The notes beneath the pieces are model-generated. The model did not search any database and had not been told where the DNA came from. It was given only the letters and a program-made list of their open reading frames with translations. From Pseudomonas aeruginosa PAO1 (GTDB lineage Bacteria > Pseudomonadota > Gammaproteobacteria > Pseudomonadales > Pseudomonadaceae): a stretch of DNA of 64,000 bases. Where the stretch lies: the NCBI RefSeq assembly GCF_000006765.1, contig NC_002516.2; one strand, 5' to 3'. The position numbers and the translations under genes were made by a program. Each line of letters begins with the position of its first letter. Positions within the stretch are counted from its first letter, which is position 1. Shown here piece after piece: positions 38,693 through 59,062 of this stretch.

Positions 38693-41104
38693 TCATTGCC
38701 TGGGCAGGGCGTAGGCGATGATGTAGTCGCCCATGCGGGTACCGAAGGAGCCGTGTCCGCCAGCGACGATCAGCACGTACTGGCGACCGTCCTTGCCGGT
38801 GTAGCTCATCGGCGTGGCCTGGCCGCCGGCCGGCAGGCGCGCCTGCCAGAGCTGCTTGCCGTCCTTCACGTCGTAGGCGCGCAGGTACTGGTCGAGCGTG
38901 CCGCTGAGGAAGGCCACGCCGCCGGCGGTGGTGATCGAGCCGCCCATGCTCGGTACGCCGACGGTGAGGCCGATCGGCACCGGGGTGTTGTCGCGGCTGG
39001 TGCCGTTCTTGTGCTGCCAGACGACCTTGGCGGTGGTCAGGTCGATACCCGCCACGTCACCCCAGGACGGCGCCTGGCACGGCAGGCCGATGGGCGACAT
39101 GAACGGATGCATGATCACCGCGTAGGGCGCGCCGGTGTTCGGCTGCACGCCGCTGGTCTCGCCCTCGCGCTTGCTTCCGCTGGGCACCTTGTCGCGCGGC
39201 ACCATCTGCGAGACGAAGGCCATGTAGTTGGGGCTGGTGAAGAGGATCTGGCGCACCGGGTCGACCGACACCCCGCCCCAGTTGAACACTCCGACGTTGC
39301 CCGGATAGATCAGGCTGCCCTGCTCCGACGGCGGGGTGTACTGGCCCTCGTAGCGCAGCGAGCGGAACTGGATGCGGCAGAGCATCTGGTCGAACGGGCT
39401 GCTGCCCCACATGTCGCGCTCGGTCAGCGGCGGGCGCAGCAGGTTGAGGTCGGAACGCGCCTGGGTCGGCGCGGTATGGTCGCCCTCCACCGCGCCCTGC
39501 GGCGCCGGCACTTCGCGGATCGGCACGATCGGCGTGCCGTCGCGGCGGTCCAGCACGTACAGGCTGCCCTGCTTGGTCGGCGCGATCAGCGCCGGCTTGA
39601 CGCCATCGGCGGTCTTCAGGTCGAGCAGGGTCGGCTGGCTGCCGACGTCCATGTCCCACAGGTCGTGGTGGGTGAACTGGTAGTTCCAGCGCAGCTTGCC
39701 GGTGTTCAGGTCGAGGGCCACCAGGCCGGCGCTGAACTTCTCGGCGCCAGGGGTGCGGTTGCCGCCCCACTGGTCGGGCATCTGGTTGCCCAGCGGCAGG
39801 TAGACCTGGCCGAGCTTCTCGTCGACGCTGGCCAGCGACCACATGTTCGGCGAGTTGCGGGTATAGAACTTGCCGGGCGCCAGGGGCTCGGTCTCGTCCG
39901 GGTTGCCGCTGTCCCAGTTCCACACCAGCTTGCCGTCGTGCACGTCGAAGGCGCGGATCACCCCGGACGGCTCGTTGGTCGACTCGTTGTCGGTGACGTG
40001 GCCGCCGATGATCACCAGATTGCGGGTGACCGCCGCCGGCGAGGTGGAGTAGTAGCCGCCCGGGGTGAACGGACCGATGCCGGCCGTCAGGTCGACCGCG
40101 CCCTTGACCCCGAAGTCCTCGCAGACCTTGCCGTTGTCGGCGTTGATCGCGATCAGGCGGGCGTCGGCGGTGGGCAGGAACAGGCGCCGCGGACAACTGG
40201 CGGCGACCGCCTTGCCGGCCTCGGAGAGCGCGGCCGGCGGCGCGCCGACGTCGCTCCTGGCGTACTGCTCTTCGTCGTAGTAGGAGACGCCACGGCAAGT
40301 CATGTGGGCGAAGCCCTTGAAGCCTACCGGGCTCTGGATCTGCGGATCGAAGCGCCAGATTTCCGCGCCGGTGTCCGGGTCGAGGGCCAGCACCTTGCTG
40401 TGCGCGGTGCAGGCGTAGAGCATGCCGTTGACCTTCAGCGGGGTGTTCTCGTTGGTCAGTTCGAGCGGATCGTCGGCGGTCGGCAGGTCGCCGGTACGGA
40501 TGCGCCAGGCTTCCTCGAGCTGGCCGACGTTGGCCGGGGTGATCTGCTTCAACGGCGAGTAGCGGTCGCCGAACTCGGTGCGCCCGTAGGCCTGCCAGTC
40601 GCCGTCCGGCATCGCCGGGGCGGTGCTGGTCATGCCGCTGTCGCGGTCGATGCGACCGACGATCTGCCCCGGATTGGTGAACTGGCTGCCCACCGCGGCG
40701 GCGCCGGCCAGGACCACCGCCACGCCCAGCGCCGCGGTGCCCAGCGGCGCCGGACCGTCGGCCAGCAGCGGGCGGCGGAACCAGGGTAGCCAGAGCAGCA
40801 GGCCGAAGACGAACCACAGAGCCAGGCGCGGCACCAGTTGCCACCAGTCCAGGCCGACTTCCCACAGCGCCCAGACGGTGCTGGCGAACAGCACCAGAGC
40901 GTACAGGCCTAGCGCCGCACGCTTGCCCAGCAGCAGCAACAGTCCGCTCAGGGCCAGGCCGATGCCGGCCAGCAGGTAGTACAGCGAGCCGCCCAGGCTC
41001 GCCAGCTTGATGCCGCCGGCCAGCAGCGCCAGGCCGGACAGCAGGATCAACAGGCCGAGCAGGCTCGGCAGCAGGCGCGATCGACTGCGGTTACCTTCGC
41101 TCAT
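38693..41104 (-). CDS. gcd: Membrane-bound PQQ-dependent glucose dehydrogenase
   Basis: Five N-terminal TM segments; DWQAYGRT...RYSPLKQITPANV, HHDLWDMD and GGQATPMSY; 803 aa. Confidence 0.96.
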   Translation of the reverse strand: MSEGNRSRSRLLPSLLGLLILLSGLALLAGGIKLASLGGSLYYLLAGIGLALSGLLLLLGKRAALGLYALVLFASTVWALWEVGLDWWQLVPRLALWFVFGLLLWLPWFRRPLLADGPAPLGTAALGVAVVLAGAAAVGSQFTNPGQIVGRIDRDSGMTSTAPAMPDGDWQAYGRTEFGDRYSPLKQITPANVGQLEEAWRIRTGDLPTADDPLELTNENTPLKVNGMLYACTAHSKVLALDPDTGAEIWRFDPQIQSPVGFKGFAHMTCRGVSYYDEEQYARSDVGAPPAALSEAGKAVAASCPRRLFLPTADARLIAINADNGKVCEDFGVKGAVDLTAGIGPFTPGGYYSTSPAAVTRNLVIIGGHVTDNESTNEPSGVIRAFDVHDGKLVWNWDSGNPDETEPLAPGKFYTRNSPNMWSLASVDEKLGQVYLPLGNQMPDQWGGNRTPGAEKFSAGLVALDLNTGKLRWNYQFTHHDLWDMDVGSQPTLLDLKTADGVKPALIAPTKQGSLYVLDRRDGTPIVPIREVPAPQGAVEGDHTAPTQARSDLNLLRPPLTERDMWGSSPFDQMLCRIQFRSLRYEGQYTPPSEQGSLIYPGNVGVFNWGGVSVDPVRQILFTSPNYMAFVSQMVPRDKVPSGSKREGETSGVQPNTGAPYAVIMHPFMSPIGLPCQAPSWGDVAGIDLTTAKVVWQHKNGTSRDNTPVPIGLTVGVPSMGGSITTAGGVAFLSGTLDQYLRAYDVKDGKQLWQARLPAGGQATPMSYTGKDGRQYVLIVAGGHGSFGTRMGDYIIAYALPRQ

Positions 41105-41257
41105 CGTCCGGTACTCCCTTCGGGGTTGATGACAGGCATTGCTTACTCTCCTATTACGTTCTGCACGCCGGGCTGTTCAGCCCGCCGCGCCGCGTTGGGC
41201 GGCGCTGAAGAAATGGCCGCTGGCCATGACCGAATCGCGGTTGTCCGAAGCAACAGC

Positions 41258-42616
41258 CTAGAACACCGTCTGGATCTTGATCCCCGCCACCAGCGCGTTG
41301 TCGACCTCGTCGACCCCGCCCGGCTGCTTGATGTATTGCAGGTTCGGCCGCACCGTCAGCCAGTCGGTCACATGCACCCCGTAGTACAGCTCGGCGTTGT
41401 ACTCGGTGTCCTGCAGCGGCTGGTACAGCGGGTTGTCGTAGTCGTCGATGCCGTTCACCTGGTTCACCAGGCGCTGGCGCTTCTTCACATCGTCGTTGAC
41501 ATGGATGCGCGCGATACCCAGGCCGATGTCGTCCTTCGGCCGCGCGTCGAACGGCCCCTTGTAGACCACCCCGAGCTGCTGGTAGTTGTCCACCACGTTG
41601 GTCGCCTTGTCGTGGACCGTCAGGTTGGCGAACAGGCTCAACCCGCGCGAGGCATCGCCGTTGTGCGAAGTGACCTGCTGCTGCGCCACCACCCACCAGC
41701 CATGCTTGCTGCCGCGCGACTTGAAGTCGTTGCCGGTCAGCCCCTGCGGCTGGCCGTCGACGTCGTCGTAGACGTCATCGGCCTTCGCCGTGCTGTAGTA
41801 GTAACCCAGCCGGTACTCGCCCGGCAGTTGCTCGGCGCCGACCTTCGGCTGCCAGATCAGCTCCACCGGCAGCAGCGCGCCCTTGGTCCCGCTGCCGCTC
41901 ATCTTGAAGCCGTTGCCGGTCTCCAGGTTCGACGGGTTCTGCTCGTAGGCGCCGACCTGCACGTACCAGTCCGGCGCGAAGTTGTACTTCACCCGCAACG
42001 CCCACTGGCTGACCGGCCAGTTGTACCAGATGCTCCCCGCCCAGTTGCCCACCTGCGAGCCGCAGAAGGCCAGGTTCTGGAAATCGCAGGGGAAGCTGTT
42101 GAAGTCCTCGCCCTCGCCGAAACGGCCGAATTTCACGTCCAGCGCGCCGGCGAAGTACTGCTGCTTGAGCCACAGCTGGGTCAGCCGCCAGGTCTGCCCG
42201 CGGCCCCAGACCTCCTGCACCGAGCTGATGTGCCCGGCACGCGGGTCGCCGATGCGGTCGTTGGAAAGGTTCTTGCCGTTGCGCTCGGTGACGGTGAACT
42301 GGAACTCGGTAGCCTTCCAGCCGAGGATCTTCTCCAGGTCCATGTGCACGCCCAGGGCGAACTGGTCGGTGTAGCGTCCGGTCTTGTCGTCGTCATAGCC
42401 GCCATCGAGGTTGGCCGCCGCCTCGCCGACGTACTCCAGCTTGAAGTCGTAGCCCTTCTCCAGCAGCTCGGTGCGCTTGCCGCCCCAGTCGCCGAGCATC
42501 CATTTCGAGTTCGGCGAGAACGCCTCGGCGGCGTGCACCGCGTTGCACAGCAGGGAGGCGGACAATAGGCCGCCGGCCACGGGGCGCAGGGCCGGGCGGA
42601 GAAGATGGGATTTCAC
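41258..42616 (-). CDS. OprB-family carbohydrate-selective porin
   Basis: WMLGDWGGKR, RFGEGEDF and RPNLQYIKQPGG, terminal Phe. GTG start after GAGG gives 452 aa. Confidence 0.92.
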   Translation of the reverse strand: MKSHLLRPALRPVAGGLLSASLLCNAVHAAEAFSPNSKWMLGDWGGKRTELLEKGYDFKLEYVGEAAANLDGGYDDDKTGRYTDQFALGVHMDLEKILGWKATEFQFTVTERNGKNLSNDRIGDPRAGHISSVQEVWGRGQTWRLTQLWLKQQYFAGALDVKFGRFGEGEDFNSFPCDFQNLAFCGSQVGNWAGSIWYNWPVSQWALRVKYNFAPDWYVQVGAYEQNPSNLETGNGFKMSGSGTKGALLPVELIWQPKVGAEQLPGEYRLGYYYSTAKADDVYDDVDGQPQGLTGNDFKSRGSKHGWWVVAQQQVTSHNGDASRGLSLFANLTVHDKATNVVDNYQQLGVVYKGPFDARPKDDIGLGIARIHVNDDVKKRQRLVNQVNGIDDYDNPLYQPLQDTEYNAELYYGVHVTDWLTVRPNLQYIKQPGGVDEVDNALVAGIKIQTVF

Positions 42617-42776
42617 GCGAACGCTTCCTCGTTGCGAATGGTCGACTGGCCGCACGCAGCGACCGCTCTACTTCCTCGATAACCTTGCAAGGAGCAAGGG
42701 TTTATGAAGAGGACTCATGATCTGAGCCAAGCAGAACAATGGTTAATTTGCGAATGATAAGGTCTTTGCAAGTAAA

Positions 42777-42791: not shown

Positions 42792-42957
42792 GCTGGAAAA
42801 CAGTGTTACGGAAACGACAACGAAGCCAGGCGGCGGGCCTCCGAGCGGGTCACCCGGGTGGTGGCCGTGGCGGGACGGGGACAACGCAGGGATTGGCAAC
42901 AATCTGAAACCCATGAACACGCTTCACGTTGTTGCCGGGAGCGGAACAATACCCGCC

Positions 42958-43239
42958 TCAGAGTTCGTCGCGCAGATAGGACCAGGGGTAGATACCGCGC
43001 TCGTGACCATCGTCGAACAGCAACTGCACGCCGTAGCCCTGCAGGCGGATATCGCGCAGGCGCACGCCCTGCTCCGCCGCGACGATCCGTCCGCGCAGGC
43101 GCTGCGCCCGGCATTGCGCACAGGGACAGGCGGCGCGCAGGCGCGCATGGTCGATCCGGCTGACCGCGCCGTCCGCCCATTCGAGCATCAGCCAGCCGTC
43201 CCTGGCGGAATTGCGCAGGCGCAGCGGCGGCTGGGTCAT
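42958..43239 (-). CDS. DUF971 / GBBH-N-like small Cys protein (93 aa)
   Basis: LRAACPCAQC, GYGVQLLFDDGHERGIYPWSYL; ATGA overlap with the HEAT gene. Confidence 0.82.
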   Translation of the reverse strand: MTQPPLRLRNSARDGWLMLEWADGAVSRIDHARLRAACPCAQCRAQRLRGRIVAAEQGVRLRDIRLQGYGVQLLFDDGHERGIYPWSYLRDEL

Positions 43240-44201
43240 GCCGGCATCCGCAGTTGCGCCAGGGCGATGCGCACCGCCTTGCGCACCTCGGGATCGCCGT
43301 CGCCTTCGGCGACCCGCAAGGCCTGGGCCGAGGCCGGGTCCGCCAGTTCGCCGAGGGCCAGGGCGGCCTCCTTGCGCAGGTTGCCGATGGGATGGCCGAG
43401 CAATGCTTCCAGCGCCTCCCGCGCCGGGCGGTGGCGCAAGCGCCCGAGCGCCCGCGCGGCGCGCAGGCGGACCTGCCAGTAGTCGTCCGCCAGGGCCTTC
43501 AGCAGCGGCTCGCCGGCCTCCTCCCGGCCCAGCTTGCCAAGGGTCGTCGCCGCCTCTTCGCGAACCTGCCATTGAGCGTCCGCCAGCGCCGCGCAGAGCG
43601 CCGGCAGCACCGTCGCCTCGCGGCTCAGGCCGAGGGCGCCGGTGGCCGCCCGGCGTACCTCCGGGTCGACATCGGCGCTGGCCAGCCTGGCCAGTTCGGC
43701 CAGGGCCGGCTGGTGGCGGAGCCAGCCGAGTACCGCCACCGCCTCGCGGCGCACCGCCGCCTGCGGATCGCCGAGGGCGGCCAGGGCCGGCACGGCGCTC
43801 TCCTCCAGGCGCAGTTCGCGCAACGCACGCAATACGCTGGCGCGGACGAAGGCATCGGCATGCCCGAGCCACGGCAGCAGGCGCCGCCCGGCGGCCGGTT
43901 CCTTGAGTTCGCCAAGGCTCTGCGCGGCGGCATCGGCCACCGCCGGCACCGGATCGGCCAGGGCCGCACAGAGCGCATCGACCACTGCGTCTTCCTCCCA
44001 GGCCTCCAGCAGGCGCGCGGCCTCGCCGCGCACGCCGGGGTCGGGATCGCCGCGCAGGGCCGCAACCAGCAACGGCAGCGCCTCCGGCAGCTCCAGGTCG
44101 GCCAGTTCGATCAGCGCCAGGCGGCGTACGCCGGGGTCGGCGTCCTCCAGGCGCGGCGACAGTTCGAGGATTTCGGGCAGGGTGGCGTTTTTACAGGTCA
44201 T
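43236..44201 (-). CDS. HEAT/PBS-lyase repeat protein (321 aa)
   Basis: About 9 repeats of D.D..VR..AA.ALG.L; ATGA overlap with the ABC ATPase. Confidence 0.88.
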   Translation of the reverse strand: MTCKNATLPEILELSPRLEDADPGVRRLALIELADLELPEALPLLVAALRGDPDPGVRGEAARLLEAWEEDAVVDALCAALADPVPAVADAAAQSLGELKEPAAGRRLLPWLGHADAFVRASVLRALRELRLEESAVPALAALGDPQAAVRREAVAVLGWLRHQPALAELARLASADVDPEVRRAATGALGLSREATVLPALCAALADAQWQVREEAATTLGKLGREEAGEPLLKALADDYWQVRLRAARALGRLRHRPAREALEALLGHPIGNLRKEAALALGELADPASAQALRVAEGDGDPEVRKAVRIALAQLRMPA

Positions 44202-45052
44202 ATGGCGATCCGCAGTCGGTCCGGGGTGATGCCCGGCGGCAAGCCGAGCGGGGTCAGGCGCGGCAACTGGCGGCCGTCGTCGTGGTCGAGCAGTTCCAGG
44301 CAGTGGCGTTTCAGGCGCACGAAGTCGGCGCTGGTCACCAGCCGGGTGTCGCGCGGGCGCGGGAAGTCCAGCGCCAGGTCGGCGATGATCCGTCCCGGAC
44401 GGGGGCTCATCACCAGCACCCTGTCCGCCAGGTACAGGGCCTCGTCGATGTCGTGGGTGACGAACAGCACCGTGGTGCGGACCCGCGCCCATACGTCCAG
44501 CAGCAAGGTCTGCATCTTCAGCCGGGTCTGCGCGTCGAGGGCGCCGAAGGGCTCGTCCATCAGCAGCAGGCGCGGCCGGTTGACCAGCACCCGGGCGATC
44601 TCCACGCGCTGCTGCATACCCCCGGACAGTTGGCCGGGCCAGCGCCCGGCGAAGTCCGCCAGCCCCACCAGTCCGAGCATCTCCATGGCGCGCCGGTTGC
44701 GCTCGGCGCGGGCCAGGCCCTGCATCTTCAGGCCGAAGGCGACGTTGTCGCGGACCCGCCGCCAGGGGAACAGGGTGTGCTGCTGGAATACCATGCCACG
44801 CTGCGGCGAAGGTCCTTCCACGCTCCGGCCGTCGACCCTCACGCTGCCGGCGCTTGGCCTCAGGTGGCCGGCCAGGGCGCCGAGCAGGGTCGACTTGCCG
44901 CATCCCGAAGGCCCGAGCAGGCAGACGAACTCGCCCGGCCGCGCCTCCAGGTTCAGATCGCGGACCGCCTCGAAGGCTTCGCTCCCCTGCCCCAGGCGGA
45001 TGCTCAGGTCGCGGATCTGGATGCGCCCCAGGCTGTTGCCGGCCGTCGTCAT
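44198..45052 (-). CDS. ABC ATPase, nitrate/sulfonate/taurine type
   Basis: GPSGCGKST, LSGGMQQRV, LMDEPFGALD and VTHDIDEA. Confidence 0.93.
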   Translation of the reverse strand: MTTAGNSLGRIQIRDLSIRLGQGSEAFEAVRDLNLEARPGEFVCLLGPSGCGKSTLLGALAGHLRPSAGSVRVDGRSVEGPSPQRGMVFQQHTLFPWRRVRDNVAFGLKMQGLARAERNRRAMEMLGLVGLADFAGRWPGQLSGGMQQRVEIARVLVNRPRLLLMDEPFGALDAQTRLKMQTLLLDVWARVRTTVLFVTHDIDEALYLADRVLVMSPRPGRIIADLALDFPRPRDTRLVTSADFVRLKRHCLELLDHDDGRQLPRLTPLGLPPGITPDRLRIAI

Positions 45053-45846
45053 CGGACCTTGCCTCCCGCCGCGTACCAGGGCGTCAGCGACGCGCCGACG
45101 CGCTTCACCAACCCACTACTGCCCATGCCGAAGAGGCCGATGAGCAGCATGCCGACCACCACCTCGTCGTAGTTCTGGATGTTGTAGGAAGCCCAGGTGT
45201 AGTAACCCAGTCCCCATTGCCCGGAGATCATCTCGGCGGTCACCAGGCAGAACCAGGAGGTGCCCATGCCGATCGCCAGGCCGGTGAAGATGCCCGGTCC
45301 GGCGCCGGGCAGCAGCACCTCGCGCAGCAGCGCCCGGCGCCCCGCCCCCAGGCTGCGCGCCGAAGCCAGCAGGCGCGGATCGAGCGCCTCCACGCCATGC
45401 ACGGTATTGAGCAGGATCGGGAACAGCGCGCCGGTGAAGGTAATGAAGATCATCGAGGCCTCCGACGAAGGGAACATCAGGATCGCCAGGGGAATCCAGG
45501 CCACCGCCGGGATCGGCCGCAGCACTTCCAGCGGCGGCAGCAGCAAGGCCTCGGCCCAGGCCGAGCGGCCGATCGCCAGGCCGAGGGCGATGCCCAGCGC
45601 GGCGGCCAGCAGATAGCCGGCGAAGACCCGCGCCAGACTGGCGCCGAGGTGCGCCAGGAGCACGCTGGACTGGGCCAGGTTGCAGGCCGCCAGCAACACC
45701 GCACCGGGCGTCGGCACGTTGGCGAAGGTCACCAGGCCCAGATTCAGTTGCAGACCGGCGGCGAGCTGCCAGAACGCCAGGCAGGCCGCCAGCGAAGCGG
45801 CGCGGGTGGCCCAGCGCCAGGGTCGGGAGATCGGAAGCGAACTCAT
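45049..45846 (-). CDS. ABC permease, SsuC/TauC type
   Basis: LRPIPAVAWIPLAILMF and SARSLGA (EAA loop). Confidence 0.92.
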   Translation of the reverse strand: MSSLPISRPWRWATRAASLAACLAFWQLAAGLQLNLGLVTFANVPTPGAVLLAACNLAQSSVLLAHLGASLARVFAGYLLAAALGIALGLAIGRSAWAEALLLPPLEVLRPIPAVAWIPLAILMFPSSEASMIFITFTGALFPILLNTVHGVEALDPRLLASARSLGAGRRALLREVLLPGAGPGIFTGLAIGMGTSWFCLVTAEMISGQWGLGYYTWASYNIQNYDEVVVGMLLIGLFGMGSSGLVKRVGASLTPWYAAGGKVR

Positions 45847-45870
45847 GGGCGGACTCCGAAGACGCCCGCC

Positions 45871-47277
45871 TCAGCGGAGCGCCAGCGCCTGCTGGCTGGC
45901 GGCGGCAAAGTCGCGTACCTCGCCGCCATGGCGGCGGGCATAGTCCTGGGCCTGCTCGCGGAGCAGGAAGGCGTTGAGGCGACCCTCGCCGTCGCGGACG
46001 AACCACGCCTGGTTGGCCAGCAGCTTGATCCCGCTGTCACGATCCTGGGCGTAGATCGCACGAATCGCCTTGCCCTGCGCCTTCAGCTCGGCAAGATCGG
46101 CCAGGGCCGACTCCGGCGAAGCGTAATGGCGCACCCTGGCCTCGCCCTTCACCCAGATCTGCGCTACCCGTTCGAACTCCTCGATCGGCCGGCCGCTGCG
46201 CGCGTCGCTGGCGCGCAGCGGCGACGGTGCGTAGTCTGCCAGCGCCGCCTGGTAGTCCAGCCCGGCCTGACGGTAGGCCTCGCGGATGTAGCGGTCGTCG
46301 ACGAAACGCTCGACGTCCAGCCCACGGTCGGCCTTCTTCAGCAGCTTCAGGGTGTCGATGGAGGTCGCCAGCGCCTGGCGGTATTCGGGTTTCCAGGCCT
46401 GGTCGCGGGTCTGCAGGCCGAGCGGACCGTGGAACAGGTAATTGACCTCGGCCTCGATGCCGGTGACCTTCTCGATCAGCTCGCTGTATTTCTCCGGTTC
46501 GGCGGCCAGCAGTCGATTGGCTTCGATGCTCGCCCGCAGGTAGGCCACCACCACCTCCGGATAGCGCTCGGCGTAGGCGGCGTCCACCAGCGCGCCATGG
46601 AAGGTCGGCGCGTTGGCCTGGGAACCGTCGTAGATCTTGCGGGCGAAGCCGCGATTGGGGAACAGCTCGGCGAAGGGTACGAAGTCGGCATGGGCGGCAA
46701 TCTTGTTCGCCTGCAAGGCCGAACCGGCGATTTCCGGCGGCTGGGCGATGATGGTCACGTCGCGCTGCGGGTCCCAGCCTTGCGCCGCCACCGCGCGCAG
46801 CAGCATGCCATGGGCGGTGGAGGCGAACGGTACGGAGATGGTCTGGCCTTTCAGTTCGGCCAGCGACTGCACCGGCGAGCCGCTCGGTACCACGATGCCG
46901 TTGCCGCTGCCACGGGTGCTGCCGGACAGCACGCTGATGAACAGGCTGCGCTTGCCGGCGGCGGCGAAGGCCACGCCGTTGAAGGTGCCGGGAAAGTCGG
47001 CCATGGCGCCGAAGTCGAGCTTGCCGGCGACCATCTCGTTGGTCAGCGGTGCGCCACTGGTGAAGTTCTTCCACTCCACCCGGTAGTCCGCATCCTTGTA
47101 GCGGCCGTCGCGCGGCAGGTATTTCTCCAGCAGGCCCAGCTCGCGGATCAGCAGCCCGCCGGCGGCGCAGTTGATGGTGGTGTCCTGAGTGCCGATGGCC
47201 ACGCGGATGGTTTCCGCCTGGGCACCCAGGGAAGTCAGGGCCAGCGCCAGGCTGGCCAGGATTGCACGCAGTCGCAT
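45871..47277 (-). CDS. ABC substrate-binding protein (SsuA/TauA type) with an extra C-terminal NosL-like domain
   Basis: Signal peptide, FTSGAPLTNEMVAGKLDFG and SVPFASTAH; about 110 extra residues at the C-terminus. Confidence 0.85.
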   Translation of the reverse strand: MRLRAILASLALALTSLGAQAETIRVAIGTQDTTINCAAGGLLIRELGLLEKYLPRDGRYKDADYRVEWKNFTSGAPLTNEMVAGKLDFGAMADFPGTFNGVAFAAAGKRSLFISVLSGSTRGSGNGIVVPSGSPVQSLAELKGQTISVPFASTAHGMLLRAVAAQGWDPQRDVTIIAQPPEIAGSALQANKIAAHADFVPFAELFPNRGFARKIYDGSQANAPTFHGALVDAAYAERYPEVVVAYLRASIEANRLLAAEPEKYSELIEKVTGIEAEVNYLFHGPLGLQTRDQAWKPEYRQALATSIDTLKLLKKADRGLDVERFVDDRYIREAYRQAGLDYQAALADYAPSPLRASDARSGRPIEEFERVAQIWVKGEARVRHYASPESALADLAELKAQGKAIRAIYAQDRDSGIKLLANQAWFVRDGEGRLNAFLLREQAQDYARRHGGEVRDFAAASQQALALR

Positions 47278-47411
47278 GGGGATTCCCCTCGAATCATGGT
47301 CATGGGAATCGTCTCCGCCACCCGGACGGTGGTGGGAAACGAGGGGTGTTTCAGAGTGGCGTCCGGGAGTGGCCGGATGGCGGGTTCTGCCTCGCTTGCC
47401 GGGAGCGGGCG

Positions 47412-47657
47412 TCAGCGCAGCAGGTAGGGAATCTCGACCTTCACCGCGCCGGTCGGGCAGTCCTTTTCGCAAGGCATGCAGTACCAGCACTCGTCGTAGG
47501 CCATGTAGGCCTTGCGGGTCGTCGGATCGATGGCCAGCAGGTCCATCGGGCAGACCTCGACGCAGACGGTGCAGCCCTTGTCGGCGATGCAGCGGTCTTC
47601 GTCGATGGTCACCGGGGCGCTGCTGCGGAAGAAGATGTCCTGGGGTCGGTAGGCCAT
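47412..47657 (-). CDS. 2x[4Fe-4S] ferredoxin, AprB-like
   Basis: CIADKGCTVCVEVCP and CWYCMPCEKDCP. Confidence 0.9.
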   Translation of the reverse strand: MAYRPQDIFFRSSAPVTIDEDRCIADKGCTVCVEVCPMDLLAIDPTTRKAYMAYDECWYCMPCEKDCPTGAVKVEIPYLLR

Positions 47658-47742
47658 GGCACGCGGTCCTCGTGGTTCGATCTGGCCCGCTTTCGTGGCG
47701 GCGGGCTCGGTGTCTAGCGGTACTACGCCGGGGCGTGGGGCC

Positions 47743-49467
47743 CTAGGCGGCGTCGTTCCTCAGCCGCAGGCGCTGGTAGGCCTGCTGTTCGCCCTCGTCG
47801 ATGGCGAACAGGTAGGGTTCGACCGGTTTCCTGAAGCTGGCCATGCGTCCCTGCTCGTCCTTCTTCAGGTGCGCGTGGCAGAACCAGGCAGCGTCGTCGC
47901 GCCGCGGATAGTCCACCCGGTGGTGGTACAGGCCCCAGCGGCTCTCGGTGCGGAACAGCGAGGCGCGCGCGGCCATCTCCGCGCAATCGCGGATAACGCT
48001 GACTTCCAGGGCGCGCATCAGCTCGTGGGGGTTGTCCGCCTTGATCCGCTCCAGGTCCTCGGCGATGGCCTGGATGCGTTGCAGGCCCAATTCCATCTTG
48101 CGGGTCACCTTGGGCGGTTGCAGGTAGTCGTTGACCAGCCGGCGCAGCTTGTACTCCACCTGCGCCGCCGGCAGGCCATGCTCGCGCAGCAGCGGCGCCT
48201 CGATCCGCGCACGCTCGCGCTCGACCTGGGCGCGGTCGACCGCGCTGAAGGCGCGCCCGGCGACGTATTCGGCGGCGTTGCGCCCGGCGAACCAGCCATA
48301 GGTGAAGGCGCCGAGCATGTAGTTGTGCGGCACCGCGGCCATGTCGCCGGCAGCGTAGAGGCCCTTCACGCTGGTCTCGGCCTTCTCGTTGACCCACACG
48401 CCGGAGGCCGAGTGGCCGGAGCAGAAGCCGATCTCGGAAATGTGCATCTCGACCATCTGCTGGCGGTAGTCGGTGCCGCGCCCGGCGTGGAACTGCCCGC
48501 GACTGGGGCGTTCGTTGCCATGGAGGATGTCCTCGATGGTCTGGATGGTTTCCTCCGCCAGGTGGTCGAGCTTGAGGAACACCGGGCCATTGCCGCCTTC
48601 GAGTTCCTGGTGGAACTCCCACATCATCTGCCCGCTCCAGTAGTCGCATTCGATGAAGCGCTCACCCCTGGCGTTGGCGGTATAGCCACCCAGCGGGCCG
48701 GTGACGTAGGCACAGGCCGGGCCGTTGTAGTCCTTGATCAGCGGGTTGATCTGGAAGCATTCCAGGTTGGCCAGCTCGGCGCCGGCATGATAGGCCATGG
48801 CGTAGCCGTCGCCGGCGTTGGTCGGGTTCTCGTAGGTACCCATCAGGTAGCCCGAGGACGGCAGGCCCAGGCGGCCCGCCGCGCCGCAGCAAAGGATCAC
48901 CGCCTTGGCGCGGATCACATGGAAGTCGCCGCTGCGGCAGTCGAAACCGAGTACGCCGTTCACCGCGCCCTCGGCATCGGTGAGCAGGCGGGTGCAGACC
49001 AGGCGGTTGGCGATGGGGATCCGCGCACGCTTGAGCTGGCGGTAGAGCACCTTCTTGATGTCGTGCCCTTCCGGCATCGGCAGCACATAGGCGCCCATGT
49101 GGTGGACCTTCTTCACCGCATAGTCGCCGGTCTCGTCCTTTTCGAACCTGACGCCCCAGCGATCCAGCTGCCGCAGGGTCTCGAAGCTGTGGCTGGCATA
49201 GGCGTAGACCGCCGCCTGGTTGACGATGCCGTCGTTGGCCACGGTGATTTCCCGGGTGTACTGCTCGGCCGTGGCGTGGCCGGGGACGATGGCGTTGTTC
49301 AACCCGTCCATGCCCATGCTGATGGCGCCGCTGCGCTTGACGTTGGCCTTGTCCACCAGCAGCACGCGCAGTTCGCGGTCGTGCTCCTTGGCCTTGATCG
49401 CCGCCATCGGCCCGGCGGTGCCGCCGCCGATCACCACGATGTCGTATTCCTGCTCCAGGGTGTTCAT
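47743..49467 (-). CDS. FAD oxidoreductase of the SdhA/FrdA/AprA superfamily, AprA-like
   Basis: IGGGTAG; KRSGAISMGMDGLN resembles AprA RSGAVAQGLSAIN; RTESRWGLYH. Confidence 0.85.
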   Translation of the reverse strand: MNTLEQEYDIVVIGGGTAGPMAAIKAKEHDRELRVLLVDKANVKRSGAISMGMDGLNNAIVPGHATAEQYTREITVANDGIVNQAAVYAYASHSFETLRQLDRWGVRFEKDETGDYAVKKVHHMGAYVLPMPEGHDIKKVLYRQLKRARIPIANRLVCTRLLTDAEGAVNGVLGFDCRSGDFHVIRAKAVILCCGAAGRLGLPSSGYLMGTYENPTNAGDGYAMAYHAGAELANLECFQINPLIKDYNGPACAYVTGPLGGYTANARGERFIECDYWSGQMMWEFHQELEGGNGPVFLKLDHLAEETIQTIEDILHGNERPSRGQFHAGRGTDYRQQMVEMHISEIGFCSGHSASGVWVNEKAETSVKGLYAAGDMAAVPHNYMLGAFTYGWFAGRNAAEYVAGRAFSAVDRAQVERERARIEAPLLREHGLPAAQVEYKLRRLVNDYLQPPKVTRKMELGLQRIQAIAEDLERIKADNPHELMRALEVSVIRDCAEMAARASLFRTESRWGLYHHRVDYPRRDDAAWFCHAHLKKDEQGRMASFRKPVEPYLFAIDEGEQQAYQRLRLRNDAA

Positions 49468-50213
49468 GCCCGCTCTCCCTTCTGCCGATCGATGCGCAGG
49501 CGATACTGGAAAGCGTCGCCGCGGTAGTAGAGGTATTCGAAGTCCAGCGGCGCGCCGTCGGCGGCATGGGTCAGGCGCTCGATACGCATGATCGGCGCGC
49601 CCTCCTCGACCGCCAGGGCGCGGGTCAGGTCGGCATCGGCGAGCACCGCGTCGATGGCCAGGTCGGCATGGCCGAGGGGAATGCCGCAATCGTTCTCGAG
49701 GATCAGGAAGATGTCGCGGGTCACCAGGTCGGCCTTCTCCAGGCGCTCGCCGAGCGCCTGCGGCAGGTAGGTGACTTCCAGCGAAACCGGCTCGCGGTTG
49801 ACCAGCCGCACCCGCTTGATCTCGCACACAGGGCTGCCCTCTTCCACCCGCAGGCGCTCGGCCACCCGCGCGCCGGCCGGCACGTAGCGCAGGCCGTGCA
49901 GGCGGTTGATGACCTCGTAGCCCATCTGCGTCATGGACTCGCCCAGGCCTTGCAGGGTGCTGACGTTCTGGAACGCCTTCGGCCGGGCGACGAAGGTGCC
50001 CTTGCCGTGGATCTTGAAGATCAGCCCTTCCTTCTGCAGGTCGCCGAGCGCCTGGCGCACGGTGATGCGGCTGACGTCGAAGGCCTTGCCCAGCTCGTTC
50101 TCCGAGGGCATGCGGCTGAGCGGCGGGTAGACGCCGTCGAGGATGCGCCCGCGCAGCAGCTCCTTGAGCTGGCTGTACAGCGGCACGGGAGAAAGCGGGA
50201 GCAGTTTGCCCAT
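49464..50213 (-). CDS. GntR-family regulator, HutC subfamily (UTRA domain)
   Basis: PSENELGKAFDVSRITVRQALGDLQKEGLI..IHGKGTFV; ATGA overlap with the flavoprotein. Confidence 0.93.
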   Translation of the reverse strand: MGKLLPLSPVPLYSQLKELLRGRILDGVYPPLSRMPSENELGKAFDVSRITVRQALGDLQKEGLIFKIHGKGTFVARPKAFQNVSTLQGLGESMTQMGYEVINRLHGLRYVPAGARVAERLRVEEGSPVCEIKRVRLVNREPVSLEVTYLPQALGERLEKADLVTRDIFLILENDCGIPLGHADLAIDAVLADADLTRALAVEEGAPIMRIERLTHAADGAPLDFEYLYYRGDAFQYRLRIDRQKGERA

Positions 50214-50244
50214 GGTCGGATTCGCTTGTCGGAGTGGCTCGGAC

Positions 50245-50260
50245 ACTTGTTATAACAAGT
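50245..50260. promoter_or_regulatory. Probable GntR/HutC operator
   Basis: Perfect 16-bp palindrome ACTTGTTATAACAAGT, 31 bp upstream of the GntR start. Confidence 0.8.
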
Positions 50261-50388: not shown

Positions 50389-51840
50389 TCAGCGCAGCGG
50401 CCGCCAGAGGGTGAAGGCTACCGGCGGCGTCCAGCCGCTGTTGGAGGTGTGCGCCTGCAGGCAGAGATAGCGCAGCCCCTCGTAGGTCACCCCATCGTCG
50501 ACCCGATAGGCCTGGTTCTCCCGCCATTGCGGGAATTGCGGATCCACCGCCCCGCCGCTGGTGCTGACCTCCAGGCCTTCGCTGGGCAGCGACTGGTTGC
50601 CCTGGGTATCGGTGGCGGTGACGAAATAGCTGTAGCGGGTGTCCGCCGTCAGGCCGCTGTCGGTGGAACCCAGCGCGGCGCTCTGGCCAACCATGGCGCC
50701 GTCGCGATAGAGGCTGTAGTAATCGATCGGACGCTGCCCGCTGGAGGCGTTCCAGGCCAGCACCAGGCTGGTCTCGCCGCGCTCCAGCAGACGCAGGCCC
50801 TGCGGCGCCGCCGGGCGCTGGTCGCCGCCCTCGCCGTCATGGATGAGGCTGGCGTAGCGCTTGCGGAACTCCCAGTTGTAGCGCTCGCCGCGCTTGTTCA
50901 GGCCATCGTCCCAGTTCACCGACCAGGTCATCAGGCCCTTGATCGCGTGACCGGCGGCTTCCAGGCGACGAAACGCGTTGCTCACCGCGGCGGGATCGAT
51001 CACGTAGCCGGTAGCCGCCGCATCGACGTTGCTCGGCAGGCCGATGGCCAGGCGCTGCGCCGGGATCCGCACGAAGTCGCGGCTGCCGGTGGCCAGGCTC
51101 TCGGTGAGGTAGTAGAGGAAGTCTTCTTTCATCGCGTCGTTGTTCTGCGCGATCCAGGCGCCCTTGCCGCCGTTCGCCTCCTGGACCCACAGGCCGTCGC
51201 CGCCCTGGTTGTAGTACTGCGGCGCGATGAAGTCGTAGACGCCTTCCAGGGCCTGCAGATAAGGCACGTACTTGCCGTTCTTGTGCAGATAGGGAAACTC
51301 CGGGGCCATGCTGACGATGAAGTGCTTGCCCTGCCCGGCGTAGTGCTCGCGCACCAGCTTGAGGGCCGCCGGCAGCACCCGCTGGTTGTCGGCCAGGTCG
51401 ATGGCGCTCTGCTCGAGGTCGATGTCCAGGCCGTCGAAACCGTAGGTTTCCACCAGACGGACGATCTCGGCGGCCAGCGCCTGCTCCTGCCCGGCGTGCA
51501 ACTCGATGTGCGCGTCGGCGCCCCCCAGCGAAATCAGCACCGCGCGGCCCTGGGCGTTGAGCACGCCGACCTGGCGGCGAAACTCCGCGTCGGACAGGTT
51601 GTATGGCTGGAAGGTCGGGATGCCGCGCCCTTTCATGAAGGCCACGGCGACCACGTTGTACTCGCTCGGCACGTCTTCCAGCGCGATGTTGGCGAACGAG
51701 CCCTGCTGGTAGCCGTCGGCGGCGCCGGCCGGCCAGTTGTGCCAGAAGCCCATGAGAATCTTCTTGCCGGCGATGCTCGGCATGGCCGCCGCGGCATCTT
51801 CGCGGGCCTGGTGCAACTGGGAAAAGTCGATCCTGATCAT
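50389..51840 (-). CDS. chiC: Chitinase C (GH18 + FnIII + chitin-binding domain)
   Basis: FDGLDIDLE (DxxDxDxE), FnIII YSYFVTATD, C-terminal WRENQAYRVDDGVTYEG...W module. Confidence 0.95.
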   Translation of the reverse strand: MIRIDFSQLHQAREDAAAAMPSIAGKKILMGFWHNWPAGAADGYQQGSFANIALEDVPSEYNVVAVAFMKGRGIPTFQPYNLSDAEFRRQVGVLNAQGRAVLISLGGADAHIELHAGQEQALAAEIVRLVETYGFDGLDIDLEQSAIDLADNQRVLPAALKLVREHYAGQGKHFIVSMAPEFPYLHKNGKYVPYLQALEGVYDFIAPQYYNQGGDGLWVQEANGGKGAWIAQNNDAMKEDFLYYLTESLATGSRDFVRIPAQRLAIGLPSNVDAAATGYVIDPAAVSNAFRRLEAAGHAIKGLMTWSVNWDDGLNKRGERYNWEFRKRYASLIHDGEGGDQRPAAPQGLRLLERGETSLVLAWNASSGQRPIDYYSLYRDGAMVGQSAALGSTDSGLTADTRYSYFVTATDTQGNQSLPSEGLEVSTSGGAVDPQFPQWRENQAYRVDDGVTYEGLRYLCLQAHTSNSGWTPPVAFTLWRPLR

Positions 51841-52058: not shown

Positions 52059-52601
52059 TCAACCGGCTTCGCTGAGTTCGGCGACCACCACTCCGGGAAG
52101 GTCTTTCAGCAGTGCCGGGGACAGCAGCAGCTTGGTCTCGCGGACCCCGGCGCCCATCACCACCAACGGCCGTTCGAAGACCGCCGCGTCGACCAGCAGC
52201 GGCATGCCTTCGGGCAAGCCGAACGCGGTGATGCCGCCGAACTGCATGCCGGTCAGCTCGGTGGCGACCTCGCGGGCGGCGAAGGACAGCCGGCGGGCCC
52301 CGAGCAGCGCCTTGACCGCGCCGTTCACGTCGAGCCGCCGCGAGCCCAGGTTGACCACCGCGGCATAGCCTTCGGCGCCGTCGCGCTTGTAGCGCAGGAC
52401 CAGGGTGTTGGCGCAGTCCTCCAGGCCAAAGCCGTAGCGTGCGCTGAACGCCGCGGTGTCGGAATGCTCGTCGGCGACGCGGAACACCACCAGCTCGGCG
52501 GAAGGCAGGCCGCGCGCGACCTGCTCCGGCAGATGGCGGTGGTAGTCGGCCGGGGCGACGGCGTCGAGCCGGTGGCGTTGGGTGTATTCGCGCAGAACCA
52601 T
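52059..52601 (-). CDS. YbaK/ProX-like aminoacyl-tRNA editing (deacylase) domain protein, 180 aa
   Basis: DTAAFSARYGFGLEDCANTLV, RRLSFA and TGMQFGGITAFG. Confidence 0.82.
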   Translation of the reverse strand: MVLREYTQRHRLDAVAPADYHRHLPEQVARGLPSAELVVFRVADEHSDTAAFSARYGFGLEDCANTLVLRYKRDGAEGYAAVVNLGSRRLDVNGAVKALLGARRLSFAAREVATELTGMQFGGITAFGLPEGMPLLVDAAVFERPLVVMGAGVRETKLLLSPALLKDLPGVVVAELSEAG

Positions 52602-52629
52602 GGGCAACCTCGAATGAAGACGGACGGCA

Positions 52630-52664
52630 CCGGCCCCTGCCGCCAGGCGGGCGGCAGGGGCCGG
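52630..52664 (-). terminator. 15-bp GC stem immediately after the ambE stop
   Basis: CCGGCCCCTGCCGCC / GGCGGCAGGGGCCGG with a 5-nt loop; no U-tract on the minus strand. Confidence 0.55.
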
Positions 52665-52668
52665 CGGT

Positions 52669-55600
52669 TCAGGTTGCCAGGTTCGCCGGCACGCCGCCAG
52701 GCACATCGGGCGCCAGGCGCTGCCGCAGGATCGCGCAGACCTCCTCCGCCGCCGTCACCACCAGGCCGTGGCCGCCGGCCAGGGTCTCCAGCTCGTAGCG
52801 GCTGGCGTGCCGCCGCCAGCCGTCGATGGCCACCCTGGAGACGCCCGGGTCCTGCTCGCCGAGGATCGCGGTGATCGGTATGGCCAGCGGCTCGCGCGGG
52901 CGGTAGCGATAGTCGGCGGCCAGGCGCGAATCGGCGCGCAGGGTGGCCAGGCTGATCTCGCGCAGCTCCGGGTCGTCGAGCACTTCCAGCGGCAGCACGT
53001 CGTACTCGCGCAGGGTTCGCAGCAACTCGGCGTCGCCCATCGCATGGAAGCGCGGGTATTCCAGGTCCGGCCCCGGAGCGCGGCTGCTGATCACGAACAA
53101 CTGCCTGGCGCGCAGGCCGTGCAGGCTTTCCAGGCGTGCCGCCAGTTCGTAGGCGAGCATGCCGCCGAGGCTGGCGCCGATCAGGGCGAACGGACGGTCG
53201 AGCAATGGCAGGAGCGCGTCGTCGATGGCACAGAGCATGGCCTCTACATCGGTGACGAATGGCTCGTCCTGGCGTTCCTGGCGCCCCGGATACTGGATCG
53301 CCAGCAGCTCCACGTCCGCCGGCAGGCGCGCGTCCCAACCACGGAAAGTGCCGGCGTTGCCGCCCGCGGGCGGCAGCGCGATCAGGCGCAGGCGCGGCTG
53401 CGCGCTCCCGCTGCGCTGCAACCACAGGGCCCGGGCGCGCTCGGTGGCGGGCGGCAACGGCGGCGCGTCGGCGGCATGGCAGCGGCGCACCACTTCGCGG
53501 GCATCCGGATCGCCCTGCAACAGCCCCAGGCTCAGTTGCCTGCCGGTCAGCCGGCGCAATTCGGCGATCGCCTGCACGCCCAGCAGCGAATGCCCGCCGG
53601 CGCTGGCGAAGCCCTGGTCGGCCGCCAGCGGCCGGCCGAGCACCCGGGACAACACCTTGAGCACCCGCCGCAGCTCCACGCTGTCCTCGGCCTGGGCCGC
53701 CGCGGGCGGCTGCACCGGGTCTCCGAGCAGCGCCAGCAACGCCTCGCGGTAGGCGCCGGCCAGTGCCTCGGCGCGCTCGGCGGGGAAACGTCCGGCGGCA
53801 TACTGGAAGCCCACCTCGAGGCGCTCGCCGGCCACCTCGAAGTCCACCGCCAGCGGCACGTCGACGTCCACCACCACCTGGTCGAGGATGCCGCCGTGCC
53901 TTACTCCCGCCGGCGCGGCGTCGTCCTGGTGGAAGTCGACGAAGTTGAACAGGCTGTCCAGGCGCAACTCGCGGTTGCGCCTGCGAATCGCCGCCAGCGG
54001 ATGGCGCCGATGTTCCAGGCTCGCGCGCTCGTAGTCGAATGCGCGACGGGCGCTGTCGAGCAGATCGACGGAAGCCGACAGCCGGCACGGCAGGGTGTTC
54101 AGGAACAGGCCGAGCAGGCGGTCCGCTCCCGGCTCCTCGGGGCGCCCGTGGCTGACGAAGCCGGTGACTACTTCATCGGCATCGCTGAAGCGGCACAACG
54201 CTCGGCCATGCGCCGCCAGCAACAACGAACGCAAGGGCAAGCCGCTGCGTTCGGCCAGGGCGCGCAAGCGCGACAGGCTGTCGGCCGGCACGTCCACGCG
54301 GACCGCCGCCATGCGCCGGGGTCCCTCCTCCGCCAGGCCGGGCAACGGCCGGTAGCGGGCGCCGGCCAGGTAGTCGAGCCAGAACAGCGCCGAGGCGGCG
54401 TTGGCCTCGGCCTCACGCTCCAGCGCCACGTAGTCGCGGAAGCCTACCGCGGGCGCTTCCGCTTCCCGCGCGACGACACCGGCGAGAAGGTCGGCGTAGA
54501 CCGCCAGCAGCTCGTCCACCAGGCTTTGCAGGCTCCAGCCGTCCAGCACGCTATGGTGTTCGGCGACGCCCAGGGCGAAGCGCCGCTCGTCCAGCGCCAG
54601 CGCGGCGAGGCGCACCAGCGGTGGGCGGCTCCAGTCGAACGGGGTGGCCTGCTCTTCCTCGATCCAGGCACGCAGGCGCAGGCGCCGTGTTTCCCCATCG
54701 AGGCCACACAGGTCGTGCACCGGCACCTCGGCGGCGACCGCCGTGGCCGGGTGGACCCATTGCAGGGGAACCTGGCCACCGTGCAGATCGAAGCCGGTAC
54801 GCAGGATCGCGTGGCGGCCGATCAGGATCGCCCAGGCGCGCGCCAGCAACTCGCCGTCCAGGCGTCCATGCACCTCGTGCAGGACGACGTTGTGCAACAG
54901 CCGTGGATCGCCGCTGGCCTCGCTTTGCAGGAGCATGCCCTGTTGCAGGCTGGTCATCGGATAGGCGTCGTCGAGCCCCTCCGGCAGGCGCTTGCGTTCC
55001 GCCGCCGACAACAGGGCGAACGGCTCCAGCGACTGCGGCGCCGAGGTCCCGAGCGCATCCGCCGGACTCGCCGGAGCGGCCAGCAGGCGCGCCAGTTCGC
55101 GGATGCTCTGGTGGTTGAACACGTCGCGCAGGGTAAAGGCAAGCCCCGCCTCGCGCGCCATGACCTGCATCTGGATCAGGCGGATGGAGTCGCCGCCGAC
55201 CTGGAAGAAATTGTCGCTGACGCCGATCGCCGGGCGTTTCAGCACGCTCTTCCAGATCTCCAGCAGGGCCGCCTCGGTGGCATTGGCCGGCGCTTCCAGG
55301 GTCTGCGCGGCCGCCTCGGCGGCCAGCGCCGCCAACAGCGCGCGACGGTCGAGCTTGCCTTCGGCGGTCAGCGGCAGGCGTTCGACCCGGGCGATCCGGC
55401 TCGGCAGCATGTAGGCCGGCAGGCGCGCCTCGAGGAAGCCACGCAGGGCCTGCTCGCTCAGCTCGCCGCCGAGGGCCGCGGCGGGGCGCGGCGCGAGCGC
55501 GCGCCAGTCGATGCGCTCAGCCAGCGACTCGGCATAGCCCGGGCGCACCGCGTAGCAGTTGTAACGGTCGGTACCCTCCAGCAGCGCGTCCTGACGGATG

Positions 55601-59043: not shown

Positions 59044-59062
59044 GGCTATCCCTCGCACGGGT

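Follow-up and report, generated by a model that had tools for sequence, protein, structure and literature searches.

The window analysed here, a 64,000-nucleotide stretch of the Pseudomonas aeruginosa PAO1 genome (contig NC_002516.2), carries on its minus strand a cluster of eight co-oriented genes (42958-50213, in the region 42958-50260) for a transcriptional regulator, a flavoprotein, a ferredoxin, an ATP-binding cassette (ABC) importer and two accessory proteins. An earlier reading made from the letters alone (the sequence-only reading) had listed these genes and their domains, and the open reading frame (ORF) calls on the window recovered all eight, every domain assignment being backed by Pfam. 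The flavoprotein is 99-100% identical to a P. aeruginosa protein, and we take the eight genes to be PA2299 (gntR) down to PA2292 (DUF971), with PA2298 presumably the flavoprotein, PA2297 the ferredoxin, PA2296 the binding protein, PA2295 the permease, PA2294 the ATPase and PA2293 the HEAT protein; the names used in papers for PA2297 ("probable ferredoxin") and PA2298 ("probable oxidoreductase") agree with these locus tags. The features of the region are:

50245..50260, no strand: perfect 16-bp palindrome ACTTGTTATAACAAGT, read directly from the sequence, a candidate operator
49464-50213, minus: regulator of the GntR family, HutC subfamily, with a winged helix and a UTRA effector domain, 249 residues (Pfam GntR 70.8 bits, UTRA 129.8 bits)
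47743-49467, minus: AprA-like flavin adenine dinucleotide (FAD) flavoprotein, 574 residues (NCBIfam NF006131/PRK08275)
47412-47657, minus: 2x[4Fe-4S] ferredoxin with eight cysteines, 81 residues (Pfam Fer4_7)
45871-47277, minus: periplasmic binding protein with a signal peptide, an SsuA/TauA-like two-lobe domain and an extra C-terminal domain, 468 residues
45049-45846, minus: ABC permease of the NitT/TauT family, 265 residues (Pfam BPD_transp_1)
44198-45052, minus: ABC ATPase of the NitT/TauT family, 284 residues (Pfam ABC_tran)
43236-44201, minus: HEAT-repeat protein, 321 residues (Pfam HEAT_2, 265 bits)
42958-43239, minus: DUF971/GBBH-like_N protein, 93 residues (Pfam PF06155, 77 bits)
42822..42841, minus: weak terminator-like hairpin 3' of the last gene, a consensus scan match only

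ATGA overlaps of 4 bases join gntR to the flavoprotein gene, the permease to the ATPase gene, the ATPase to the HEAT gene and the HEAT to the DUF971 gene, which makes four of the seven junctions; the pattern is typical of operons, and we therefore read the eight genes as a single operon. The gntR gene has an alternative GTG start at 50246. A promoter scan returned no match, and the matches of a terminator scan were no more numerous than in shuffled sequence. The ferredoxin gene lies between two untranslated gaps of 134 bp (47278-47411) and 85 bp (47658-47742), in contrast to the remaining junctions, most of which overlap; among Pseudomonas loci, the gap 3' of the flavoprotein gene ranges in length between about 40 and about 300 bp.

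At least 595 relatives came out of a scan in which each species was represented by one genome, and the best 80 of them (83-88% protein identity) were kept for comparison. The complete eight-gene set occurs in identical order at 70 of these 80 loci, five others are cut by contig ends, and the remaining five lack the three ABC transporter genes only, which places the conservation of the cluster far beyond chance. The genes on either side of it are not conserved, and in this the cluster behaves like a module. Across Alpha-, Beta- and Gammaproteobacteria and Acidithiobacillia, the flavoprotein itself keeps an identity of 66-88%, its carriers including Pseudomonas, Acinetobacter baumannii, Burkholderiales and rhizobia; the layout in A. 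baumannii is identical to that in the window. On a Rhizobium plasmid the order is DUF971-flavoprotein-ferredoxin-HEAT, followed by a Crp/Fnr regulator and then the ABC genes. Plasmid pTcM1 of Acidithiobacillus caldus (L086, 9158-14035) carries GntR-flavoprotein-ferredoxin-HEAT followed by FdxA and by a 1153-residue GltD-like/FNR-like NAD(P)H oxidoreductase; an OprD-family porin gene and ABC genes lie nearby. In Streptomyces (L089, 8001-10778) the order is GntR-ferredoxin-binding protein-permease-ATPase, followed by a fusion of HEAT protein and flavoprotein, the latter 57% identical to the window flavoprotein, and all 120 Streptomyces matches listed (P0391-P0509) are such fusions of about 900-950 residues. 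In a Porticoccaceae metagenome-assembled genome (L070, 5041-8900), an insert of about 3.8 kb separates the flavoprotein gene from the ferredoxin gene.

The five loci without ABC genes (L054, L058, L065, L076 and L080) all belong to the P. putida group and retain gntR-flavoprotein-ferredoxin-HEAT-DUF971. Four of the five have genes for a sulfonate-type ABC transporter next to them, on the other strand. At L058, where all neighbours were read, the set comprises an ATPase, a fused double permease and an SsuA-family binding protein, together with a dioxygenase of the TauD family, a LysR regulator and a TonB receptor, and L076 has ORFs of the same kinds where it was read. We presume that this neighbour set resembles the ats/sft sulfate-ester cluster.

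The flavoprotein matches the NCBIfam family NF006131, named 'fumarate reductase/succinate dehydrogenase flavoprotein subunit', with 1137.1 bits over residues 1-573 (cutoff 587) and is thus a member of it. Once this family and a fusion model described below are set aside, the best NCBIfam matches are the two models for AprA, the flavoprotein of adenosine 5'-phosphosulfate (APS) reductase (NF005331, 291.8 bits, cutoff 557; TIGR02061, 185.5 bits, cutoff 641.75), both below cutoff and both ahead of SdhA/FrdA (174 bits) and NadB. The ranking of PDB entries is similar: the alpha subunit of the PAPS (3'-phosphoadenosine 5'-phosphosulfate) reductase of Methanothermococcus thermolithotrophicus (8a8o_A, 213 bits) and A. 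fulgidus AprA (148 bits) stand above E. coli SdhA (96 bits), FrdA (68 bits) and NadB (63 bits). The phylogeny that the sequence-only reading had proposed as a check on its view of an AprAB-like enzyme, rather than an SdhA or NadB, was built from library-search representatives, E. coli SdhA, FrdA and NadB, orthologues from four other phyla or classes and two solved AprA-type sequences taken from HMMER alignments (A. fulgidus AprA in part only). A quick tree of 78 rows and a careful tree of 42 rows agree with each other: the PA2298 group forms a clade (support 100/99) nested in a 13-row clade of flavoproteins (100/99), most of which are followed by a small ferredoxin gene where the context was read, and this larger clade is sister to the clade of AprA and PAPS reductase (100/100; joint node 99/98). 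Forcing PA2298 together with SdhA, FrdA and NadB cost 73.6 log-likelihood units and was rejected by the approximately unbiased (AU) test (p 4.8e-5). Scores, trees and the AU test thus concur with the earlier view; the flavoprotein does not group with bona fide SdhA or NadB, and we conclude from these comparisons that it is AprA-like and that the succinate dehydrogenase/fumarate reductase name given to it by every database is wrong.

Alignment at the level of residues specifies the kinship and its limits. The segment KRSGAISMGMDGLNN of the flavoprotein aligns to ERSGAVAQGLSAINT of AprA and places a Gly at the position of the His that binds FAD covalently in SdhA and FrdA ('KRSGAI' in the flavoprotein vs 'TRSHTV', with His45, in SdhA and 'ERSGAV' in AprA); both the absence of this His and the AprA-like loop had been noticed in the sequence-only reading and are borne out here. 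We take Asn74 and His398 (A. fulgidus numbering) to be active-site residues of AprA and Arg265 to be a substrate-binding and catalytic one, in line with published structures. Asn74 is retained ('GLNN' aligned to 'AINT'), as is the equivalent of AprA His398 and SdhA His354 ('SGHSASG' vs 'GGHGQAG' in the M. thermolithotrophicus PAPS reductase, MtPAPSR, the only sequence compared in this column). The flavoprotein also has the Trp insertion of AprA ('FRTESRWGLY' resembling AprA 'FRKETRWPGY', vs 'FRTESR--GAH' in SdhA), and the 'GANRLGGNS' loop with Arg399 of SdhA is deleted in it, as in AprA. By contrast, Arg265 of AprA is replaced by Leu ('INPLIKD' vs 'IPFRFKD' in AprA and 'IALRVKD' in MtPAPSR), and none of the sequences in the 13-sequence clade has an Arg at this position; Trp234 is replaced by Tyr ('GTYENP' vs 'RTWYAI') and Tyr95 by Glu, and the Glu141/Gln145 loop is swapped for 'VHHxGxYVLPMPEG', which is conserved across the PA2298 clade. 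In the archaeal PAPS reductase, this loop is said to determine the specificity for PAPS (PMC10322725).

With Arg265, Trp234, Tyr95 and the Glu141/Gln145 loop replaced, the substrate is predicted to be neither APS nor PAPS. The residues His242, Arg286 and Arg399 of SdhA (E. coli numbering), presumably the dicarboxylate-binding and catalytic ones, have no equivalents either, the aligned positions being Asn, Thr/Gly and the deleted loop. The alignments accordingly depict an AprA scaffold with a different substrate pocket, and an enzyme that by its residues is neither an APS or PAPS reductase nor a fumarate reductase. It shares the FAD_binding_2 and Succ_DH_flav_C domains and the overall fold with SdhA, FrdA and NadB, whereas the covalent-FAD His, an SdhB-type subunit and a membrane anchor are all missing from the window system.

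The ferredoxin tells a parallel story. Its cysteines are arranged as C-x6-C-x2-C-x3-CP and C-x2-C-x2-C-x3-CP, it scores 39.7 bits against the NCBIfam aprB model, and it resembles the N-terminal domain of AprB: residues 1-63 of Desulfovibrio gigas AprB align to it in one continuous stretch that scores 36 bits (the entire chain scores 42.7 bits); just two polyferredoxins outscore D. gigas AprB overall, through several weaker stretches. In this alignment 'ECWYCMPC' falls on AprB 'ACWECYSC', so that the echo of AprB CWECYSC which the earlier reading had heard in the CWYCMPC motif is real, and the Trp after the first Cys of the second motif is retained. In the PAPS reductase, Trp42 serves as an electron-relay residue, like the Trp of AprB (PMC10322725). 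The ferredoxin, at 81 residues, lacks the C-terminal tail with which AprB wraps AprA; the "AprB-like" proteins of anaerobes in the 'AprAB-like' clade are likewise tail-less (PMC8477390).

Taken as a pair, flavoprotein and ferredoxin share with AprAB (A. fulgidus 1JNR/2FJA, D. gigas 3GYX) and MtPAPSR (8A8O) the two-subunit design of an FAD flavoprotein and a 2x[4Fe-4S] ferredoxin, non-covalent FAD with the 'RSGA' motif, the equivalents of Asn74 and His398, the 'E(T/S)RW' insertion and the ferredoxin Trp. They differ in the replaced Arg265, Trp234, Tyr95 and Glu141/Gln145 loop, in forming a clade of their own and in scoring below the cutoffs of the AprA hidden Markov models (HMMs). The gene company differs as well: the window pair is accompanied by ABC importer, GntR, HEAT and DUF971 genes in place of sat, qmo or APS kinase genes, and its hosts are aerobes.

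The importer is of the sulfonate type, as had been claimed for it, at the level of families. The best NCBIfam match of the binding protein is the SsuA family (TIGR01728, 111.7 bits, cutoff 163.5) and that of the ATPase is the taurine ATPase (258.7 bits, cutoff 357), while the permease scores 121-145 bits against the ntrB, SsuC and TauC models, each time below cutoff. By sequence, the closest solved relatives of the binding protein are E. coli SsuA (58 bits), TauA (56.6 bits) and a Xanthomonas sulfonate binder. A Foldseek search with an AlphaFold2 model of the binding protein (predicted local distance difference test score 79.5) returned SsuA (from three species) or TauA in all top eight places, with target-normalised template-modelling scores of up to 0.84, followed by binders of nitrate, bicarbonate, pyrimidine and pyrroloquinoline quinone (PQQ). 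This likeness to SsuA and TauA is the strongest evidence for a sulfonate-like ligand, which it suggests at family level. In the same model, an extra C-terminal alpha/beta domain (about residues 350-468; 45871-46230) is confidently folded; it is conserved, has an invariant Trp375, Arg383, Arg406 and Tyr409, lies outside the matched SsuA/TauA structures and gives a faint NosL match as its only sequence hint. Both the ATPase and the binding protein also have weak phosphonate-family matches. The three-gene layout with binding protein, permease and ATPase is that of SsuABC and TauABC, from which the window system differs in the extra conserved domain of about 120 residues, in having an Fe-S flavoprotein as partner enzyme instead of SsuD or TauD, and in its GntR/HutC regulator in place of CysB, Cbl or SsuR.

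The accessory proteins and the regulator complete the module. The fusion model NF010374/PRK13800 matches both the window flavoprotein (848 bits) and, with its C-terminal part, the HEAT protein (90 bits). Because flavoprotein and HEAT protein are fused in nature, with a linker predicted to be disordered in the Streptomyces fusion (residues 597-631), they may well work together physically, and the HEAT protein is a likely physical partner of the flavoprotein. Cofitness with Mrp, BolA and YggX has tied proteins of the DUF971 family to the maintenance of Fe-S clusters (preprint 10.1101/072470), and by analogy the DUF971 protein of the operon is a probable Fe-S cluster maintenance or assembly factor; a dedicated copy would make sense since an Fe-S enzyme is made here in strict aerobes. 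The regulator combines an N-terminal PF00392 with a C-terminal UTRA domain (PF07702), the make-up of the GntR/HutC group, and among its relatives are PhnF and PhnR, each with a score of about 107 bits. The palindrome ACTTGTTATAACAAGT, placed 32 bp upstream of the ATG of gntR, shares bases with the alternative GTG start. Its core, TTGTnnnnACAA, recurs within 220 bp upstream of gntR at no fewer than 35 of 83 related loci, including Cellvibrio and Porticoccaceae, and the palindrome is the likely operator of the regulator. The conserved palindrome upstream of gntR fits an operon that is self-repressed and substrate-induced; a sulfur-starvation regulon of the CysB type would not match this picture.

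The sequence-only reading had also likened the genes to asfABC of P. putida S-313. According to reviews, asfRABC comprises a reductase-ferredoxin pair, a binding protein and a LysR regulator, and is needed together with ssu for arylsulfonate desulfonation (PMC4267179). We used the asfA marker primers asfAF1all and AsfBtoA, taken from the supplement of PMC9694294. Neither primer matched the PA2298/PA2297 genes at up to three mismatches, whereas both matched, with at most two mismatches, adjacent flavoprotein and ferredoxin genes at 927.9-929.9 kb of the C. metallidurans CH34 megaplasmid, a strain in which AsfA/AsfB are Rmet_4334/5 (PMC2864759). On the basis of the primers and the CH34 annotation, the CH34 gene served as stand-in for AsfA in place of the P. 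putida S-313 protein. CH34 AsfA (549 residues) is 23% identical to PA2298 over 395 residues, scores 56 bits on the PRK08275 model and falls in a separate, long-branched clade; a joint clade with PA2298 was rejected (AU p 6e-6). Database queries with either protein returned generic names only, none of them "AsfA". With CH34 AsfA as reference, primers, identity, clade and AU test rule out the window flavoprotein as an AsfA orthologue: the asf kinship does not hold, the proteins being distant paralogues, and what is left of it is the gene order flavoprotein-ferredoxin-binding protein.

In design the two systems have in common a FAD_binding_2 flavoprotein belonging to one superfamily, with a 2x[4Fe-4S] ferredoxin after it, a sulfonate-type binding protein or ABC transporter, and a proposed organosulfur role. 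They differ in that CH34 AsfB has 111 residues and a CFMCE motif against 81 residues and CMPCE for the window ferredoxin, that the regulator is a divergent LysR-type AsfR as opposed to a co-oriented GntR/UTRA protein, and that no HEAT or DUF971 gene is found among the ORFs flanking CH34 asfAB. The CH34 pair (L083, 13389-19862) faces, tail-to-tail, a second ABC transporter of the NitT/TauT type and a gene of the amidohydrolase family, and a gene for a rhodanese-rich protein lies about 2.4 kb upstream of asfA, on the opposite side of the pair.

Directly downstream of the operon in the window (38693-42655, minus) are genes for a PQQ-dependent glucose dehydrogenase (803 residues) and an OprB-like carbohydrate porin (465 residues), a neighbourhood that is not kept in other species. 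The other flank holds the chitinase gene chiC (50389-51840) and a small YbaK-like ORF (52059-52706), both unrelated to the operon, as is a gene for a non-ribosomal peptide synthetase of 2136 residues (52669-59079, minus), which we take to be ambE of the AMB antimetabolite cluster.

The sequence-only reading had put the system forward as a candidate undescribed pathway, and our search of the indexed literature found no functional description of PA2292-99 or of the PA14 tags, only entries in tables (on slight repression by N-acetylcysteine, on membership among genes repressed by cyanide, and on a transposon-sequencing call for the 81-residue ferredoxin) and a mention in a comparative-genomics study. 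Likewise, no description of the PA2298 family was found in the literature on AprA-like enzymes and enzymatic reductive desulfonation.

On balance, we favour a self-contained, substrate-induced operon that would take up a small anion and subject it to one two-electron redox step in the cytoplasm. The imported compound would react at the FAD of the flavoprotein, and the ferredoxin, with its two clusters, would carry electrons to or from the pool of NAD(P)H or ferredoxin. The HEAT protein would act as scaffold or partner subunit, the DUF971 protein would keep the oxygen-exposed clusters loaded, and the GntR/HutC regulator would repress its own operon until induced by the substrate. Exchange of electrons with NAD(P)H through Fe-S proteins is suggested by the GltD-like modules in the A. 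caldus cluster and beside P0142, a gene of a sister clade that adjoins one for a GltD-like Fe-S flavoprotein (Fer4_20 and Pyr_redox_2). GltD-type modules usually feed electrons in, and a reductive direction with release of sulfite therefore has a slight edge over an oxidative one. As for the substrate, an organosulfonate-like or sulfate-ester-like anion is the class that we would name before any other, if only tentatively. Besides the likeness of the binding protein to SsuA and TauA, three points speak for sulfur: the architecture of one transporter with one enzyme is that of the tau and ssu operons, the enzyme appears to descend from the AprA lineage, and the core cluster of the P. putida group adjoins genes of the organosulfur type. 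A non-sulfur anion (a carboxylate, a phosphonate or a nitro compound) is about as likely as an organosulfur compound. Rather unlikely, in our judgement, is the boldest version of the sulfur reading, a new class of ferredoxin-linked, O2-independent flavoenzyme that, with its HEAT and DUF971 proteins, would reductively free sulfite from an imported organosulfonate, sulfate ester or sulfamate. If it were true, an AprA-derived 'desulfonating or desulfating reductase' would operate in aerobic soil and host-associated bacteria, as a third route of sulfonate and sulfate-ester cleavage beside the oxygenases (SsuD, TauD, AtsK) with the hydrolytic sulfatases and the glycyl-radical lyases.

Several observations weigh against a sulfur substrate. 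All three importer proteins score below the curated cutoffs of the SsuA/TauA families, and the regulator is of the substrate-responsive GntR/HutC type and not of the CysB/SsuR type usual in sulfur scavenging. The adjacency to organosulfur-type genes in the P. putida group probably reflects a single evolutionary event. The reductive cleavage of an organosulfur oxyanion put forward in the sequence-only reading stays a hypothesis: AprA chemistry is not simply transferable, because APS-binding residues including Arg265 are replaced, and the loss of Arg265 in the alignment weakens a direct transfer of the sulfite-adduct chemistry in particular. More weakly, neither the flavoprotein (4.9% Cys plus Met) nor the ferredoxin is poor in sulfur, as proteins typical of sulfate starvation are. 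In the nearest sister clades (P0133, P0142), the genes that follow are those of TctCBA transporters, of the tripartite carboxylate type, and not sulfur genes; no consistent sulfur signal was seen in the gene context of P0127, P0128, P0130, P0136, P0140 and P0142, the sole hint around these six distant relatives being one PF03601 (YeiH-like) neighbour, and more distant relatives of the flavoprotein stand in unrelated gene contexts of anaerobes. The same sister-clade transporters lend weight to a catabolic dehydrogenase that would oxidise a non-sulfur organic anion, the ferredoxin handing the electrons on to the respiratory or NAD(P)+ pool, as do the substrate-type regulator with its PhnF/PhnR relatives, the weak phosphonate-family matches of ATPase and binding protein, the weak binding of 2-aminoethylphosphonate by TauA (PMC6906117), and the aerobic life of all hosts, in which oxidative catabolism is the norm. 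We nonetheless regard such a dehydrogenase as somewhat unlikely: the dicarboxylate residues His242, Arg286 and Arg399 of SdhA/FrdA/NadB are gone, only sulfonate binders stand among the best matches of the binding protein by sequence and by fold, and the cluster contains no further catabolic enzymes, which would be odd for a carbon pathway.

Two explanations that assign the pair to systems already known fare worse. An AsfAB-type pair that supplies reducing power to a separate oxygenase (e.g. SsuD), as proposed for asfRABC of P. putida S-313, would account for the order flavoprotein-ferredoxin-binding protein, which is also the name order asfA, asfB, asfC, for the common succession of a FAD_binding_2 flavoprotein and a 2x[4Fe-4S] ferredoxin, and for the organosulfur-utilisation genes beside the core cluster in the P. 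putida group. It is very improbable given that the primers miss the window yet match CH34 asfAB, that identity (23%), model score (56 bits) and AU test (p 6e-6) all separate the two flavoproteins, that the GntR gene is co-oriented and not a divergent gene for a LysR-type AsfR, and that most genomes have no oxygenase gene in or beside the cluster. A bona fide APS or PAPS reductase, or an AprAB that runs in reverse to oxidise sulfite, we hold to be the most improbable of all, even though no characterised relatives are nearer than the PAPS reductase of M. thermolithotrophicus and the AprA of A. fulgidus, and the equivalents of Asn74 and His398 and the ferredoxin Trp are retained. Against it stand the exchange of Arg265 for Leu, Trp234 for Tyr and Tyr95 for Glu, the remodelled nucleotide loop at Glu141/Gln145, AprA HMM scores far under their cutoffs (185 vs 642 and 292 vs 557), a ferredoxin without the AprB tail and the absence of sat, qmo and APS kinase genes from the cluster. 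The importer and the substrate-type repressor are moreover ill-suited to an intracellular nucleotide substrate, and P. aeruginosa has its own assimilatory APS reductase of the CysH type, whose structure is shown in PMC10322725.

The most defensible description of the operon is that of a widespread, highly conserved and mis-named orphan module that would take up a small anion and carry out one flavin/Fe-S redox step on it. The system is tractable, with one regulator that has a clear candidate operator, one binding protein and one enzyme. The PA2298 family is the sister lineage of the APS/PAPS reductases, with a remodelled substrate pocket, and the identity of its substrate would reveal a use of AprA-type flavin chemistry outside sulfate respiration. 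Should that substrate be an organosulfur compound, the module would constitute a new route of sulfur mobilisation in soils and hosts, and would correct the assumption that such flavoprotein-ferredoxin pairs equal AsfAB.

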